Assembly (NCBI GenBank): GCA_976226885.1
Contig: OZ320323.1
Location: 52,142,001-52,206,000, forward strand
Direction: 5' to 3'
Length of the DNA stretch: 64,000 nt
Source: Iphione sp. A-MEVVRFRX5
Taxonomy: Eukaryota
A program made the position numbers and the translations under genes. The notes beneath the pieces were generated by a model, which saw only the letters and a program-made list of their open reading frames with translations, had not been told where the DNA came from and searched no databases. How positions within the stretch are numbered: position 1 is the first letter of the stretch; every line of letters begins with the position of its first letter. This document shows, one piece after another, positions 20,163 through 32,289 of the stretch.

Positions 20163-23100
20163 ATATGATGCGTCATGTTTCTATTTTGTAACGTCATATT
20201 TGCCCGTAATAACCACAGGCCTAGCTCACAATACGTATGATTGTTTTGACAACATAGGAAGCAACCAGTACGCAAAATAAGACAGTCTCACACAGCTATA
20301 TATAAATGGTCAGTACTAACAACAGAAAAATTCACATGGGTTTTATTTGAAATAAATCACACTGAAAGTTTTGTGAGAGACATCAAAATATTTAATATGT
20401 ATATTGCCAATTATTTAGCACTCGCGATGATACTAATAACAATGCATGTTTGTCTCTAATGCTGCTATGTAACTAAGATCAGGGTACCAGAATGTGATTG
20501 ACTTCAAGGGCATCTTTATCGAAAATATACTTGTTACTATGATCAATATTGATTGCAAAACTTATGTCCGAAATGTGTATCTTGTTTTAAGCCCTGGCAA
20601 ATTAGGCAGGTGAAGTAAAAGCATAAAAGCCACAGTGTTAAGACTATGGTGGATAAAGAAAGGAACTACCCTGCAGTGTAATAAGACAAGCAGTTAGTGT
20701 ATCGCTAGTGTTGCTTTGGTGGCTGGTAACTGCAGTGAATCTTTACAAACTGATATGTGGGATGAAATTTGTAATGTGAAACAACCTCGTTAGGTGTACC
20801 TTGTATTATGCCCTTGCAATACGGCCAAGGTAAATAAAATATTTTCAAAAAGGTGTAATGTGAGTCCGTAAAGTAATAACCACGATTTTTTTTAAAGATT
20901 TCTGTCAACACTTCTGTCAAACTACCCCGTGTGCTGGTACCGTGTGCCGCTAACGTGCGTGAGTTGCTCATTAACATAAAAGCTTTGACTTTGGTCAACG
21001 CTACCGCCGCGCGACAATTAAAAAATTAGCATTACGCAATTTCATAAAAGGTCACCTCAACAAAAGAACGCGCATTGATGTCACCTCACACGCGGTAAAA
21101 ATACACAACTCCACTCGGTTCTATTTTGATGTCAGACTTCCGATTTATTGCCTATAGTTCCCGATTTATGGCGGAAGTACCCTTTAATTCCCTCATCACG
21201 TGAGAAGCGGTTATCTTTATTGGTGCGGTTCTTAAAATCAGCGGCCGTAAAAAAAACCCTCGATGATGTTTCCCAATAAAACCATAGAGGGCGCGCTGCT
21301 CCTACTTTCCCCGTCGTTCAATATCACACCGATCCCATTTTCATATTTGAAGCAGATAATATGGACATTTTGACGTTGGGTTTTTGACACATCACACAGG
21401 ATAAATGTAATATTCCCTGTGTTTTATTTCACCCAGCACGATGAAACTGATGTTCATGTACGTACGAGATAGAACAATATTTGCAGTGTATATAAAATGA
21501 CTATTATAGTGAAGACAGACTCGTCTCATTGTATTAATTTTGTGTATATCGTTTGAAGCCCTGGCGCATTTGCAGCCAAGTTAAATAAAGATAGGCCTAT
21601 AAAAATGTATGTATATGTACATAGACAAATCATTGGATACATGCAAATTGTAGACAGTCCGGGCACCATTCGGACTGCCAGGTAAAATAACAGTAAAAAA
21701 CACTCAAACCTTCGTTTTGTGCCGTGTTTATCATTGAATACGTACGTACCATAAACTGTGTCTATAATCTAACCCCCCTCCCCCCCGGGTATCGGACATC
21801 GCCTGTCACCAACAAAAGACATCGGCTGCATGGATTCTGATAACTATTGAACAAAAATGAATAAGAAAAACAAAAAAGCAAACAATTCACGGGAAGAATT
21901 TGACAGTGTCTGTTGAAATAAAGAATCTGAAATCAGTCAAGGAGGAGGCTCAGAACTTGATCTTTCATGGGATGAGAGGGGGGTCCTTCTTGGTCCTTTA
22001 TTATTTATACAATTATGTTACTACAGACTCCTGATGTCCCCCAGACCCAGTTATAACCCCCACAAAGATTTAAAATATCATATTTAACCTGTATACTTAC
22101 TACAAAAAAACAGGCTATCCCGGAGAATACATTCGGGTACATCTATTGGCGGAATCAGTCAAATACATTGGTGGCTAACCTTTCGGGTATACAACCCTCA
22201 GAAGCCTCTCTAAAATTCAGTCAGTCGAATACTTTAATTCAACATGGACCGTTCACTGTTGTTAAATGACTCCGTTAGGTTGGGCACCCTGTTTCTTCAA
22301 TGTGCATGTGTTGTTCATCAGTAATTTGCTTCTAACATGACTAAGGAGATGCATGTATACACACCAGAGAGCAGCCAAGGCTCGTGCTTCAAGTCTAAAC
22401 TTGTTGTCAAAGAGCAGACCTGACAACTGGGATCTTTCTTCAGAACTGAGATTCTAAGGCCTCTTAGTTATCTTCTTCTTCTCGGAGATGACCAAAAGAA
22501 AGAAAAAGAGAGGTAGATTTTCAAACTGAAAGAACGAGACANNNNNNNNNNNNNNNNNNNNNNNNNNNNNNNNNNNNNNNNNNNNNNNNNNNNNNNNNNN
22601 NNNNNNNNNNNNNNNNNNNNNNNNNNNNNNNNNNNNNNNNNNNNNNNNNNNNNNNNNNNNNNNNNNNNNNNNNNNNNNNNNNNNNNNNNNNNNNNNNNNN
22701 NNNNNNNNNNNNNNNNNNNNNNNNNACCCCTGTATTCTGTATCTCTATGTCTCCACCTTCCTCTGCCGGTTTCTTTATTCTGTGTGCTCACTGTAATTTT
22801 GTCTGATAACTACTATGCCTTCCAAATAGAATCTGTTAAATCAATATTAGAGGCCAGTAGAATGAATGGGAAGCGGGTATTTTTTTGGCTCGAGACTAAC
22901 TCTTCAATAATTACAATTCTTTATTGAAATGAATCGATTGGTATTTGGTAGTGTTTTCTTTCATTCTGACGTTGGACAATGGAGTTCACATGACGCATGA
23001 AAATCGTGCAGATTCCTCATAGAATTCCGCCTTCTGATATTCAAGTGTCGCTCAACATTAGGCCCGTTCGGTCGAACCCATGCAGCGAGTTACGGAGTCT

Positions 23101-25340
23101 TTCAGACATGTGATCTGTAATTCATCAAAATGACGTTGAATTCACTGAGTGCCAACACATTGTTAGAGTGAATGAAGACCATCGAATAAAACGGAATCCT
23201 TACATAAAAAAAAGATAAAAGGAAAAGCGATACATTGTTAGAAATAGTTTGAGCTGTGGACGGGTTCCTGATATCAGTATTAAACTTACGATTAGGACCT
23301 CACTTTCACCTCGTCTGTGAATTACACCTGATTGCTACACAGGCGTGTCAGTTAAGAGCATGTGACGGGGGGGGGGGCTAGGGGTACATGTGTATCTCTT
23401 ACATCTGGTCCCTAAACTGCTGTGATTAGACGGACAAATCGTCTTCCTAACGTCCCTTTCTCTTGTCCGGGATTATTTCTTTCCGCCAATTTATTTGTTT
23501 TTTATCAATTAAACACCAACAAACATCACAGCGATGAGCGCCCCCTCCCCCCCCCCCTTCAACGCTTTAACTGCCTGCTGGTTGCCGCTGACCTGCGCTG
23601 GTCCCCAACGGATGAGGAGGATTAGTGATTTGAACATTTCTTGAAAGGCCCAGGGAAAGCTGCAGATTCCAGGATTTGTTTCAAATTATTACCGCTATCA
23701 ACCCCACAGTGCTTCTTATCGCCAGAGTGTCTTGTATATTGACATCTCTTATCTTTATTATCTGCTTCTTGACGCGCACCCTCCGAGGGTGATTGCGACC
23801 CTGGATATCCAGGGGTGACCGTCTAAGGATATCTTTTTTTTTTGGTCTGTTACACAATGTAATCGAAGTAAAGAAATTCGATTCGGCTAAATTTGCCGAG
23901 TTTAATTTGAAGTCTCCCCTCACAGCCTGGTGCCCCTTCCGCCCACGTTGCCGTCTCACGAATTCCTCGACACACATGATCACACGTGGAATCGCTTCTT
24001 GGAAACCAACGTGGAAAGAATAAGGAGAGCATTGTGTTTATTTTCCTCGGAGAAGAGCAGCGTAAAGGACAAAGACTATACAAAATGCCTTAACGCGTCT
24101 ATGTATCGAGCCTACAAATAAGAATGCATAATCGATATACATATATATATATATACATGTACATATATATGTATAACATTTGGGGTCAACCGCTGCCAGC
24201 TGTCTCTCTCATGATCTTATTATTACACTCTCGGAGTTACACTAACGAATAACTGCGCATAAGATGAAAAGATCCAATAGAATATCGCGGAAGAGTTCAT
24301 CTCGACGGGTTTGGTACCACAGCTATCTGAAAATGAGCATGAAAGTGATAGCTTATATTTTATACAATTAAAATAGTGTGAGAAAAATCAGAATGGTGTC
24401 AAAAAAAGATGACTGCTTGTATGGTGCTTTCTTTATCAGTTAGGTCAAATCCACATTAATTGGAAAGGTAAATTGAAGAAAAAACCTTGATGGTAGGTAA
24501 TGCCTGCATGAGGTGCGATCTAGCCAGACCCACACGGACTAATCTTGGTCTGCTTACTAGTTGTAAACTATGAACTGATTCACGAACACTCGTGTTATGT
24601 GTGACATGTTCACCCTTTTTGCCTTAAATTGCTTTATGTTGCATTCTAGAATGTTAAACTTCTAAGCTTTATGCAGATTGAACAATACATTTAATCACCT
24701 AGCTATCAGTGTCATGAAGAGATGGCTAGTCAATTTTTCAATATCACATTACATTCAGTTACAAACAAATTATTCTGTGTGTCTTGTGCTATAAGAAAAG
24801 AAAATCCAATATCGTAGTATTGCTCCAATATCCCAGTCGCACAACTTTTGCACTTTCATTAGAAGTAATACTTTGGTGAGTATATTCCATTCTCCCTCTC
24901 CCCCGTCCCTCCACCCCCCCCCCCGCCGGGAGTTCTGGTGTCATGTCAGTCAGGTGTGTTCTTTACGTACATACCCCTTCCTCCTCCCTCCCTTCTCTCG
25001 ATACGTCTCCATGACTGTTATCAGTTCTTACCCGTGGATCACGTGACACCTCCATGTAAGGAGAGTTGTCACCTTTACGCTTTGCGCGCCCACCCCCCTT
25101 CCACACACACACAGACCCACCCCCTACTAATTGCCCTGGCGTGGGTCAGAGCTGGCCGGGCGCCTTCCCTTAGATCCCACCCCACCCCGCTCCGCAGGTT
25201 AATTACAGGTGTTATCACCTGGCTCAGGTAGTGGTTTCGCGCACACCCCCCATCCCATCCCCCCACTCGCGCGCCACCTATCGGCCGGCCCACCCACCCT
25301 GGAGGAGAGAAGTCACCCTCACAGGGAGACGCTGTGGCCC

Positions 25341-25551
25341 GACCCCCTAGCGGTAGCGCCCCCTAGCAGTAGAGGCGCTCCTCTTCGCGGTCACCACCAA
25401 AGCCAGACGCGTTCCCCGACCCCTTGATGGTGGCGTCCGACGCCCAAAGACGCGCGGGGGCCAACGCCCCCCAGTGGAGGAGGTCCCCACACACATGCAC
25501 ACAGTCGTAAGGAAAGGTTCCCAGGACGAATCGGCTAACGCCCTCTAGTGG
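25341..25551 (-). promoter_or_regulatory. Cluster of CTCF-like motifs in the proximal promoter
   Basis: gaccccctagcgg (25341), gcgccccctagcag (25356), cgccccccagtgg (25465) and cgccctctagtgg (25539) match the reverse CTCF core GCGCCMYCTAGYGG. Confidence 0.5.
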
Positions 25552-25634
25552 AGGAGGAGGAGGAGGTCCTGCAACTAGCAAGGACAGGTGACCAGGGAGC
25601 CGGAGTGACCTGTTCGGGGGGTGGACAGGTGGGG

Positions 25635-25675
25635 TATATAGAGAGGTGCGCAGGAGGTAGCTGACCATATCAGTC
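25635..25675 (+). promoter_or_regulatory. TATA box and Inr of the homeobox gene
   Basis: TATATAGA at 25635-25642, with CA and TCAGTC Inr-like sequences at 25666-25675. No ATG lies between these and 25836. Confidence 0.7.
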
Positions 25676-25835
25676 GCAGTTCCAGCGCCGTAGACAGATC
25701 AACAGACACGAACCCGACCATCTTCAACCCCGAGTAAATCTAAATCCCCCAGCGGATACCTCCGACCTTGCACCCCCGTGTCGGGCAGACGACATTCACC
25801 ACCAATCCCGCACCCGTGGAACGCTCGAGGGAAAG

Positions 25836-25905
25836 ATGGCGGACATGTTCTACTTCACTAAATCCAACAGCCACCAGATGGCAGGCAACATGCAGCGACG
25901 AGATG
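25836..25905 (+). CDS. PRD-class homeobox gene, coding exon 1 (MADMFYFTKSNSHQMAGNMQRRD-G)
   Basis: First ATG after the TATA/Inr (gaaagATGGCG). Donor G|GTATGC at 25906, phase 1, matches the exon 2 acceptor phase. Confidence 0.8.
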
Positions 25906-26363
25906 GTATGCGACATCAGTCAATATAAGTTAACCTCCATCAATAATGCTTGCCTCATATCTGACATATGTTTTGTAAATAGGTGTTCACTAAATTGAAT
26001 CATAGCAAACCCTGTTATTGTTAACAACTATTGTATATATATAAACAGTCTTAAGTAAGTCAATTGCGAAACATTGTACTTAGTCCTGGTACCATTTCCT
26101 GGTTAAATAGAAGTTTCAAAAAAGGATCGGTGCAACTCAGAGGAAGTGTCAAGCTATCATGTCAGCTATCGATGCATCTTCAGTACAACAGAAGCGGTCA
26201 ATTAATTTTGTGAATTAAATCACGTGAGGATGAGCGTTGATTGACTGTTGGGCAGAAATCGTAGATGATTCTGTGTAAGCCCTATCAACTTGTTACTCCA
26301 GTATGTAGTATGACACACCAAACCCGGTATCACCCTTTATGGTCTCCCCTCCCCCCTCCACAG

Positions 26364-26554
26364 GTCCTCCCTTCGTGCCGCTGGCCCCGCTGGTGTCGTG
26401 TGCCCCTCCTCCCCGCCAGAGGCGCTCCAGGACCATGTTCACGGAGGCGCACATCCAGCGCCTGGAGGAGTTCTTCGTGCGGGACCCGTACCCGGACATC
26501 TACAGCCGCGAGCAGCTCGCCGAGGACATCGGGGTCCCCGAGGCCAGGATCCAG
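26364..26554 (+). CDS. PRD-class homeobox gene, exon 2 (homeodomain residues 1-46)
   Basis: Pyrimidine-rich acceptor ccctccacAG. Encodes QRRSRTMFTEAHIQRLEEFFVRDPYPDIYSREQLAEDIGVPEARIQ with the PRD-type YPD..REQLA and PEARIQ. Donor CAG|GTAATA falls after codon 46. Confidence 0.97.
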
Positions 26555-26579
26555 GTAATATGAGCTACTCAACCCAGTC

Positions 26580-26760
26580 TATATGTAGAAATGTATGTAA
26601 GTACGTACGTGGGTATGAGCTATTCACCCCAGTGTATATTCATGTATGTAAGTATGACTGTATGTATGGATGTGCGTATGTCTGTTTATATGTATGTATG
26701 TAATGTATATGAATGTATGTACATGTATATTTGTACGTATGTGTATATGTGGATGTATTT
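26580..26760. repeat. Degenerate (TATG)n microsatellite in intron 2
   Basis: Repeated tatgtatg/gtatgt runs. Confidence 0.8.
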
Positions 26761-26974
26761 GGAGTTAGAATAGTCTTGCAGATGACTTGTCACTCCACAA
26801 CAGCATACACGTACATCCATGCACAAATTGTTGAAATTGTTAGCATAAATGTAAATGTGTGTACATATATATTTTCCTCCCCATCCCTCTTATCTGCAAG
26901 GCAAAGCAATAGGTGTGTGTGTGTGTGAATATGAATTAATTCGTGCTGTTTTTCTCCTCCTCCGCCACCTACAG

Positions 26975-27300
26975 ACCTGGTTCCAGAACAAGCGGTCGCG
27001 GACCCGCCGTCAGATCAACAACCAGCGCCGCACCTCTCCGACCCCCGTCACACCTCCCAGCTCGGGCCCCTCCTCCCCCTCCACGCCCGCCTCTCCACGC
27101 CAGCCCCCGCCACCAGGCCGCGCCACCTCGCCCTACCTCCTCCAGGGTACCTCCAGGGCTCCCGCCGTCACTCCAGGCGCGGCCAGCCATCATTGTCATA
27201 CACAGGCTTCGAGGAAACAGGAAACGACGTCACCGAAGACGCCCGTGACGTCACCGCGGGCTGATCAGAATGACTCGGGCGTTCTGGATTTGAGTATAAA
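26975..27300 (+). CDS. PRD-class homeobox gene, exon 3 (helix 3 TWFQNKRSR plus S/T-P-rich region, ends VLDLSI-K)
   Basis: Acceptor ttttctcctcctccgccacctacAG, phase 0. WFQN completes the homeodomain. Donor AA|GTGAGT, phase 2. Confidence 0.95.
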
Positions 27301-27547
27301 GTGAGTTGGACCACCAATTCTTCTTATTCTGTAATCTGTTTTGGCAGACCAAATATAAAGTATTCTTGCATTTTCCCCCACACCATATATCAACAAGACA
27401 AGCTCGTGGTACGTGAAATCGCTATACCCTTCCTGATCCAAGCATATATAGCATAATTACTGTCATTTTTTCTCCATATGAACTTGATGGACTTGTCGCT
27501 TCCTCTGTTCCGTCTCTCTAAATCAATGAAGTTACTGCGGTTTCCAG

Positions 27548-28277
27548 GTCCAATGAGTCTCCCAAAGAGACACCAGCTTCGTCCGCTGCTCCCCAGATGG
27601 CTCCCCACCCAGACGCCGGGCGTCCCTTCTTCACACCCTGGGCGACTCCGACCCCCTCTGCGTCCTCCTTCGCCGCCCGCCGCGCCGCTGCCGACGCCAT
27701 CTTCGTCGCCGCTACACGCGCCCACCAGGCGGCGTTGCCTGTGGCGCCCGTACCGGCTTCCTCATCCGGGTCCCTTCCGAGAGCGACGCCCGGCGTCGCT
27801 CACAACCCGTGGATGTACGGCTTCACCCCCGGCTACAACGCCAAGGACGGCGTCTACTACCTGCAGCCCCTTCCTAACAGCCCCCTGCTGCAGCGCGTCG
27901 CCGACACCGCCCTCCCCGCCTCGCCCGGCCTGTCGCCGCTCGCCGTCGGCGGCGCGCCATGGTCGCCGACCTTCCTGTCGCCCTCCCTCCGCACGTCCCT
28001 CAGCAGCTCCGTCTTCGTCTTCCCCGACGTCCAGTCGACGATGGCGACGGCAACGGCTTCTTCCGGTGTCGCTTCCTGTAGGGGGACCACCACCGACGAC
28101 GACGACAGCAGCGAACATCCGGTTTCGGAAGGGTCGACGTCGCCCGCTTCCGTCGCGCTGCCGCCGTCTGCTGACAAGTCGGAAGATCTGAGTGGGTCGC
28201 CTGGCTCCGACACCGGAAGTGGTTCGTCGGGATACAGCAGCCGCGACTGCCTCAGCCCAATCGACGTCTGTAACTAA
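27548..28277 (+). CDS. PRD-class homeobox gene, exon 4 (Pro/Ala/Ser-rich C-terminus ending SPIDVCN*)
   Basis: Acceptor tttccAG at 27547. AA+G restores a frame continuous with ORF 27597..28277. GC-rich codon usage. Total CDS 1317 nt = 438 aa plus stop. Confidence 0.88.
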
Positions 28278-28472: not shown

Positions 28473-28478
28473 AATAAA
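28473..28478 (+). terminator. Polyadenylation signal of the homeobox gene
   Basis: First AATAAA, about 195 nt after the stop codon. Confidence 0.65.
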
Positions 28479-31715: not shown

Positions 31716-32289
31716 TTATGCAGGCAGGACCAGTCCTCATAGATACGGTAAGTGGGTACTGAATGGAGGAAGTGCAGGATGTGTGGGTTATGCAGGCAGA
31801 ACCAGTCCTCATAGATATGGTAAGTGGGTACTGAATGGAGGTAGTGCAGGATGTGTGGGTTATGCAGGCAGGACCAGTCCTCATAGACACGGTAAGTGGG
31901 TACTGAATGGAGGTAGTGCAGGATGTGTGGGTTATGCAGGCAGAACCAGTCCTCATGGACACGGTAAGTGGGTACTGAATGGAGGTAGTGCAGGATGTGC
32001 GGGTTAATGCAGGTTGGAGCAGTCCTCATAGATACGGTAAGTGGGTACTGAATGGAGGTAGTGCAGGATGTGTGGGTTATGCAGGCAGAACCAGTCCTCA
32101 TGGACACGGTAAGTGGGTACTGAATGGAGGTAGTGCAGGATGTGTGGGTTAATGCAGGTTGGAGCAGTCCTCATAGATACGGTAAGTGGGTACTGAATGG
32201 AGGTAGTGCAGGATGTGTGGGTTATGCAGGCAGAACCAGTCCTCATAGATACGGTAAGTGGGTACGTAATGGAGGTAGTGCAGGATGTG
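31716..32289. repeat. 72/73-bp tandem repeat, 8 copies
   Basis: gcaggatgtg recurs at 31774, 31846, 31918, 31990, 32063, 32135, 32208 and 32280. Confidence 0.97.

Follow-up and report, generated by a model that had tools for sequence, protein, structure and literature searches.

An intact PRD-class homeobox gene of Iphione sp. with relatives as far as Owenia and a likely place in spiralian PRD clade V

Is a homeobox gene that stands outside the canonical PRD-class families an orphan of its lineage, or does it belong to a group that has already been catalogued? This question is raised by positions 25836-28277 of a 64,000-nucleotide stretch of DNA from Iphione sp. A-MEVVRFRX5 (GenBank assembly GCA_976226885.1, contig OZ320323.1; the whole stretch is called the window below), where a sequence-only reading had described an orphan-looking PRD-class gene. 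Our analysis indicates that the locus is a real, intact protein-coding gene for a transcription factor of the PRD class, with a single homeodomain that carries glutamine at position 50 (Q50). We further conclude from the comparisons reported here that the gene is not an orphan but a new full-length member of a catalogued, uncharacterised spiralian PRD group, and membership in PRD clade V (PRD-V) appears likely.

The gene model comprises four exons on the forward strand, with a coding sequence of 1317 nucleotides (nt), that is, 438 codons and the stop. The three introns, in phases 1, 0 and 2, are all of the GT...AG type, with acceptors rich in pyrimidines. Exon 1 (25836-25905, 70 nt, ending in phase 1) codes for the N-terminus, MADMFYF..., and exon 2 (26364-26554, 191 nt) for the N-terminal flank and positions 1-46 of the homeodomain (26417-26554). 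Exon 3 (26975-27300, 326 nt, ending in phase 2) supplies homeodomain positions 47-60 (26975-27016, residues TWFQNKRSRTRRQI), a Pro/Ser-rich linker and, at its very end, the conserved motif DSGVLDLSIK (27272-27300), whose last codon is completed at 27548. Exon 4 (27548-28277, 730 nt including the TAA stop at 28275-28277) codes for a Ser/Pro/Ala-rich, mostly disordered tail in which several islands are conserved: GRPFFTPWAT (27618-27647), NPWMYGFTP...GVYYLQPLP (27804-27875), VFVFPDV (28011-28031) and, at the C-terminus, EDLS...SSGYSSRDC.SPIDVCN (28182-28274). The GC content is 0.66-0.70 in exons 2-4, 0.51 in exon 1 and 0.37-0.40 in the introns. Reading of the forward strand also revealed a TATA-like box (TATATAG, 25635-25641), a putative promoter element about 200 nt 5' of the ATG and within a GC-rich block (24981-25840, GC 0.62), and an AATAAA polyadenylation-type signal (28473-28478), presumably used by this gene, about 200 nt 3' of the stop.

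The homeodomain occupies amino acids 42-101 of the protein and is encoded by 26417-26554 plus 26975-27016. A Pfam comparison of exon 2 alone gave the Homeodomain profile (PF00046) at E = 1.9e-11; profile positions 1-45 are covered, and the alignment breaks off where the exon does. The intron splits the domain between codons 46 and 47: exon 2 ends with ...ARIQ before the gt donor and exon 3 opens with TWFQN after the ag acceptor. Residue 50 is Q, YPD lies at positions 25-27, and the top PDB matches all belong to the PRD class (DUX4, CRX, aristaless, paired, PHOX2B, PAX6/3, ALX4, OTX2, PITX2 and GSC). With a homeodomain that best matches PRD members and an intron at 46/47, the gene is a member of the PRD class. 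A gooseberry paired domain, used as a tblastn query for a paired box, matched only the homeobox in the 64-kb window. The same was true of two OAR-bearing proteins used as tblastn queries, and PF03826 found no OAR motif on exon 4. No second homeobox was found in the window with the gene model as query, and no eh1-like FSIxxIL motif was seen by eye in the gene model. The sequence-only reading had proposed a complete four-exon, 438-residue model with phases 1, 0 and 2, which we rebuilt identically from the window. It had also reported a homeodomain without a paired box and the PRD hallmarks, and here the Pfam match, the outcome of the paired-domain query and the presence of the 46/47 intron, YPD and Q50 bear it out.

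The gene has a close counterpart in another species. Exon 4, extended nine in-frame codons upstream, which brought 438-residue proteins within the length limit of the word-index query, matched one protein among 5.8 billion. This protein, P0001, is a prokaryote-style open reading frame (ORF) call that corresponds to the last exon of L001; this locus lies on a contig of 2.3 Mb in an ENA metagenome assembly. The whole gene is present there, with four exons in phases 1, 0 and 2 that encode 436 amino acids, and exon 2 likewise measures 191 nt. The MADM start is identical and the last 17 residues differ by one substitution. Over their whole length the window and L001 proteins are 54% identical, within the homeodomain 90%, and the exons are the only parts of the two loci that can be aligned, at the DNA or the translated level. 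The Nei-Gojobori ratio of nonsynonymous to synonymous divergence (dN/dS) is 0.064/0.517 = 0.12 for the homeodomain and 0.43/1.10 overall. The homeodomain evolves under purifying selection and, since synonymous divergence from L001 amounts to 0.5-1.1, selection of this kind acts on the gene in two well-separated species. That the locus might be an unexpressed relic, or a chance ORF that merely resembles a gene, would be in keeping with its lack of RNA support, but we find this scarcely credible. The frame is open over four exons with canonical splice sites, the structure has been kept at the synonymous divergence and homeodomain dN/dS given above, and the TATA-like box and the AATAAA lie at plausible distances. 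The structure goes far beyond what chance would give: the start, the intron phases and the C-terminal end recur in the L001 species, and conservation is confined to exons.

More distant relatives were sought in an exhaustive phmmer search with exon 2 against 1.84 billion representative proteins, which returned 5338 matches at E <= 0.001. Multi-homeodomain proteins top the ranks because scores are summed over domains; none of the single-homeodomain matches exceeded 72% identity in that set. The best single-domain matches were P0033, P0028 and P0063 (exon ORFs on ENA contigs), Asterias XP_071804438, Haliotis XP_071083769, which is annotated "prophet of Pit-1-like", and Owenia CAH1785182. A second orthologue, L002, shares 73% homeodomain identity and the same intron phases, exon 3 ending in phase 2, and carries the motifs TWFQNKRSR, RPFFTPWAT, NPWMYGYTP and, at the C-terminus, SPINVCD. 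A further relative, L004 (4754-5800 plus 8937-9512), was found in the ENA sample that also contains L002, on a contig of low coverage; TWFQNKRSR and the 46/47 intron are present, intron 3 is absent and the tail ends with SSGYSSR...VIVC. A third, L003, reads VWFQNRRSR. The 46/47 intron is common to L001-L004, Owenia and Haliotis, and the tool-computed homeodomain identity to the window gene is 63-65% for Haliotis, 63% for Asterias, 63% for L003 and 60% for Owenia. As to the neighbourhood of these loci, a single-exon ORF of the Ras/Roc family (178 amino acids; L002 11315-11851, minus strand) lies 3.6 kb downstream of the L002 gene, and no counterpart of it was seen in the window; a reverse-transcriptase ORF (RVT_1) is located 3 kb downstream of the family member in L004.

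The TWFQNKRSR signature is otherwise seen in Capitella, and the nearest full-length named relative comes from Owenia fusiformis (CAH1785182, P0143), both in agreement with a probably annelid host. This protein, recorded as an unnamed homeobox protein, is similar in length to the window protein (428 amino acids). Its gene lies at about 41.69 Mb of CAIIXF020000005.1. As in the window, exon 1 (91 nt) ends in phase 1; the length of exon 2, exactly 191 nt, is that found in the window gene and in L001. The intron is again at homeodomain 46/47, WFQNKRSR is present, with QNKRSR in the recognition helix, and the protein starts with MASM where the window protein starts with MADM. Beyond the homeodomain, the two proteins have in common a (P/V)LDLS motif, a YG(F/Y)TP...G.YY island and the C-terminus I(D/N)V(C/W)(N/D). 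The Owenia gene differs from the window gene by V47 instead of T47, by the absence of intron 3, by a tail identity of about 19% and by a canonical PLDLSK motif where the window protein has VLDLSIK. A profile built from the non-homeodomain parts of the window protein and of L001 nevertheless had Owenia as its best non-self match among 176 PRD proteins (domain E = 2e-4). As a word-index query, P0143 yielded few relatives, whether whole or as its homeodomain region, and with exon 4 as query the ESM Atlas gave nothing but disordered tails of a generic transcription-factor type, none of which reached the trust threshold. Together, the Owenia features indicate that orthologues reach at least to this species.

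Phylogeny widened this circle. Maximum-likelihood trees of the complete homeodomains that we had collected, one with 85 rows under LG+G4 and one with 72 rows under LG+C20 with posterior mean site frequencies, both contained a clade of nine members: the window gene, L001, L002, L003, L004, two Haliotis genes, Owenia and a gene of the rotifer Rotaria (support 85/75 and 84/84). The clade is set apart from the Otx-like, Pax3/7-like, Arx/Drgx/ESX1-like and DUX-like groups, while echinoderm genes and P0164 stand beside it without a resolved placement. We consider it improbable that the gene is a strict lineage novelty of one annelid subgroup that resembles its Owenia, Haliotis and rotifer counterparts in no more than generic PRD-homeodomain features. 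Such a novelty would fit the restriction of convincing alignment outside the homeodomain to L001, L002 and L004, the single exon 4 match among 5.8 billion proteins and a homeodomain identity of only 60-65% to Owenia and Haliotis. It is at odds with the phase of intron 1 and the exon 2 length of 191 nt that Owenia has in common with the window, with the Owenia counterparts QNKRSR, MA(D/S)M, YG(F/Y)TP...G.YY and I(D/N)V(C/W)(N/D), with the first rank of Owenia in the homeodomain-free profile search and with the recovery of the nine-member clade by two models.

Could the gene instead have diverged from within one of the named canonical families? In the PRD homeodomain alignment of Barton-Owen 2018 (PMC6118893), the canonical families are near-invariant across phyla and all carry A54, and S54 occurs in PRD-V sequences, in amphioxus Aprd6 and in one unclassified leech sequence. 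Counted by hand against that alignment (supplementary file 12), hence not as a tool result, identity of the window homeodomain to canonical Prop, Phox, Pax3/7, Shox and Dmbx is about 48-53% (amphioxus Prop 52%, Phox 53%, Dmbx 48%, Shox about 48%). The same counts gave 57% for Lottia PRD-V_C1, 53% for Spirobranchus PRD-V and 50% for amphioxus Aprd6. None of the printed Arx, Alx, Rax, Otp, Prrx, Pitx, Drgx and other canonical rows, judged by eye and uncounted, looked closer.

Family by family, the PAX families (Pax3/7, Pax4/6) were rejected on the absence of a paired box from the 64 kb and on residue 50, which is Q and not S; the OAR-bearing aristaless-related families (Arx, Alx, Rax, Otp, Shox, Prrx, Pitx, Drgx) on the absence of an OAR motif and, for Shox, on the identity of about 48%. 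Prop, Phox, Hbn, Uncx, Vsx, Repo, CG11294, Gsc, Otx and Dmbx were set aside on S54 in place of A54, the K50 families Otx, Gsc, Pitx and Dmbx on Q at residue 50, and the DUX family, for which two tandem homeodomains are expected, on the single homeobox of the gene and of the whole window. Prop is the obvious candidate among the canonical families, given that the Haliotis relatives P0076 and P0154 bear the automatic NCBI name "prophet of Pit-1-like" and that YPDIY and EARIQ are common to the window gene and Prop. Yet the window gene is about 52% identical to amphioxus Prop by hand count, whereas the printed oyster, insect and amphioxus Prop homeodomains are nearly identical to one another; it has S54 where canonical families have A54; it is without an OAR motif; and no match above 72% identity turned up among the 1.84 billion representatives. 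Descent from a canonical family, Prop included, is in our view very improbable.

Several claims of the sequence-only reading can be judged at this point. Its view that the homeodomain does not match the Otx, Gsc, Pitx, Arx, Rx, Hesx or Mix sequences extends to the canonical families in general, given the identities of about 48-53% hand-counted for five of them and the 72% ceiling on single-domain matches. The terms "orphan" and "novel", taken strictly, do not survive the finding of same-phase orthologues in at least two other assemblies (L001 and L002), of the L004 relative and of the Owenia gene, and the homeodomain phylogeny groups the gene with Haliotis, Owenia and rotifer genes. Its wording "novel or poorly characterised member" was right in placing the gene outside the canonical families and wrong on strict novelty, given a catalogued spiralian PRD clade.

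A non-canonical spiralian PRD clade has been catalogued in annelids, molluscs and rotifers by Paps 2015 (PMC5322547) and Barton-Owen 2018 (PMC6118893). Like the window gene, PRD-V members have a Q50 PRD homeodomain with YPDI, RIQ and S54 (WFQN(R/K)RS(R/K)), several of them have T47, and they are spiralian-restricted and fast-evolving. The homeodomain of Capitella Ctel_1526154 ends with HTWFQNKRSRAKR (Paps 2015, PMC5322547) and reads TWFQNKRSR, as does that of the window gene, and the trees place Haliotis P0076, which is close to Lottia PRD-V_C1, in one clade with it. In Paps 2015 (PMC5322547, files 4 and 9), Ctel_1526154 and the Lottia genes later named PRD-V_C were placed under "CUT clade I", and those Lottia genes are PRD-V in Barton-Owen 2018 (PMC6118893). 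Judged by the PRD hallmarks that they bear, the sequences binned as "CUT clade I" (Ctel_1526154 and Lottia PRD-V_C) are PRD-class genes. We estimate at about 0.75 the probability that the window gene belongs to a fast-evolving, non-canonical PRD group, spiralian-restricted as sampled, that matches PRD-V; within PRD-V, the subgroup is probably that of the Lottia PRD-V_C genes. Membership in PRD-V is likely and not proven, because the named PRD-V sequences are absent from our trees and many canonical families are missing from them.

A number of points weigh against this placement and what is built on it. The support for the nine-member clade is moderate and based on 60 columns. The canonical families in the trees are those found among the search matches (Otx, Pax3/7, Arx/Pph13, Drgx-like, ESX1 and DUX), and the remaining ones were compared through the printed alignment only, by hand count or by eye. 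Two things connect the gene with PRD-V: the common S54, and Haliotis P0076, for which a hand count against Lottia PRD-V_C1 gave about 70% identity. The gene model rests on sequence data, the DNA-binding specificity discussed below is a prediction from sequence, and the CtBP-like motif described below has no first proline of the usual kind in the window and is more degenerate in L002. In addition, the printed PRD-V members are only 53-57% identical to the window gene (Spirobranchus PRD-V and Lottia PRD-V_C1, respectively), and support for the PRD-V clade was weak or absent in the source surveys themselves (PMC5322547, PMC6118893).

The similarity to certain deuterostome genes offers another explanation, namely a PRD family that dates back to early bilaterians and has since been lost, or has escaped recognition, in most lineages; its deuterostome members would then be Aprd6 and echinoderm genes, for instance Asterias XP_071804438 and a Strongylocentrotus purpuratus gene annotated "paired mesoderm homeobox protein 2A". 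The Asterias homeodomain (P0116) is 63% identical to that of the window gene and so equals Haliotis in closeness; WFQNRRSRLRR is present in S. purpuratus P0165, S54 in Aprd6, and the echinoderm genes lie beside the nine-member clade in no resolved position. According to a suggestion in Barton-Owen 2018 (PMC6118893), Aprd genes are among the members of PRD clades I, IV, V and VI. On the other hand, the echinoderm genes fall outside the clade supported at 84/84, Aprd6, at about 50% by hand count, is no closer than the canonical families, Asterias P0116 and P0164 (from a Logan assembly) carry an N-terminal eh1-like motif that the window gene does not have, and no non-homeodomain motif is common to the window and Asterias. 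We hold an ancient family of this kind to be unlikely, if with a small but real chance, and retain the placement in a spiralian PRD group. The eh1-like motifs, ..IEDILGI.. in P0116 and ..IADILGI.. in P0164, are found in two of the nearer homeodomain relatives; within the wider group, these two may form a branch of their own that recruits Groucho.

Comparison with individual deuterostome regulators shows both what is shared and where the window gene departs from them. Amphioxus Aprd6, to which a spiralian PRD-V gene was linked by BLAST in Barton-Owen 2018 (PMC6118893), has a non-canonical Q50 PRD homeodomain with S54 (WFQNRRSR) and YPDI, as has the window gene, but it is absent from the tree and its hand-counted identity sets it no nearer than canonical homeodomains. 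Mammalian DUX4, the best sequence match in the PDB, resembles the window gene in its PRD class, in helices 2-3 (PYP.I..RE.LA..IG.PE.R.Q) and in S54, its score being high because two domains are summed; unlike the window gene, DUX proteins have two homeodomains, and DUX-like sequences occupy separate tree clades. Echinoderm Pmar1/Phb and other fast-evolving PRD regulators also have a divergent Q50 PRD homeodomain and no paired box. The echinoderm genes P0116 and P0165 are among the nearer matches, yet they lie outside the clade and one of them has an eh1-like motif.

How might the protein work? The DNA-contact and core residues R2, R3, R5, F8, L16, F20, W48, F49, Q50, N51 and R53 of the homeodomain are kept, so that binding to TAAT-core sites would be expected. 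Other Q50 PRD proteins dimerise cooperatively on palindromic P3 sites, and by analogy the window protein could form a cooperative dimer on such sites. The unusual combination T47/K52/S54 in the recognition helix is found in the window gene, L001, L002 and L004 and can be read in the printed Capitella homeodomain; among published PRD-V sequences, S54 is shared (WFQNRRSR/K) and T47 is present in several members (PMC6118893). These three residues may shift specificity (from TAATNNNATTA) or backbone contacts.

The tail, about 340 amino acids long with 17% Ser, 15% Pro and 13% Ala, has an AlphaFold mean predicted local distance difference test (pLDDT) score of 48, exceptions being a helix over AAR.AAADA and a hairpin in the GFTP..GVYY island (pLDDT 80-84), the tail motif with the widest conservation. 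The short conserved motifs of this disordered tail most likely dock cofactors. The LDLS-type motif reads VLDLS(I/V)K in the window and L001, VIDFSVR in L002 and PLDLSK in Owenia, and VLDLS(I/V)K resembles the CtBP-binding PxDLS; the protein would then, speculatively, be a repressor. We regard a CtBP-type motif and the repression step as doubtful, because the first proline is missing in the window and the motif is degenerate in L002. It would be something of a long shot to propose, further, that T47/K52/S54 marks an annelid PRD-V subfamily with changed specificity, acting as a CtBP-recruiting, lineage-specific developmental repressor and a spiralian counterpart to Pmar1-like PRD repressors.

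The surroundings of the gene are rich in minisatellites, with 29 Tandem Repeats Finder rows in the 64 kb. These include a 23-bp unit in 55 copies at 3876-5149, a 114-bp unit in 4.8 copies at 7145-7690, a 72/145-bp unit in 8 copies at 31716-32289 and an 80/240-bp unit in 6.6 copies at 46508-47036. Six N stretches (6007-6181, 6313-6447, 22542-22725, 38270-38529, 38576-38840 and 48832-49084) add up to 1272 bases, and several of the long ORFs listed for the window are meaningless because they run across them. Pfam gave no match on 18 other ORFs of the window, and Rfam none on the whole window. These scans are consistent with the earlier description of a gene standing alone in a repeat-rich gene desert, in which small exons of other genes are possible. 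Two GC-rich blocks, at 11601-12140 and 58481-58720, have an observed/expected CpG ratio above 1, compared with a window mean of 0.66, and the ORFs that overlap the first of them had no Pfam match.

Non-canonical, taxon-restricted homeobox genes are common in spiralians, and the surveys that catalogue them (PMC5322547, PMC6118893) list only the 60-residue homeodomains. The motifs of the window protein outside the homeodomain have no PRD-V counterpart for comparison because neither a function nor a full-length account was found in the two surveys. The Iphione locus and its relatives supply a full-length structure with conserved introns, one of them common to Owenia, and non-homeodomain motifs that permit orthology calls beyond the reach of the homeodomain alone. 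The conserved, unusual recognition helix T47/K52/S54 is directly testable. The gain is incremental and brings no new kind of system: it consists of an improved annotation of this PRD group and of a testable candidate regulator.

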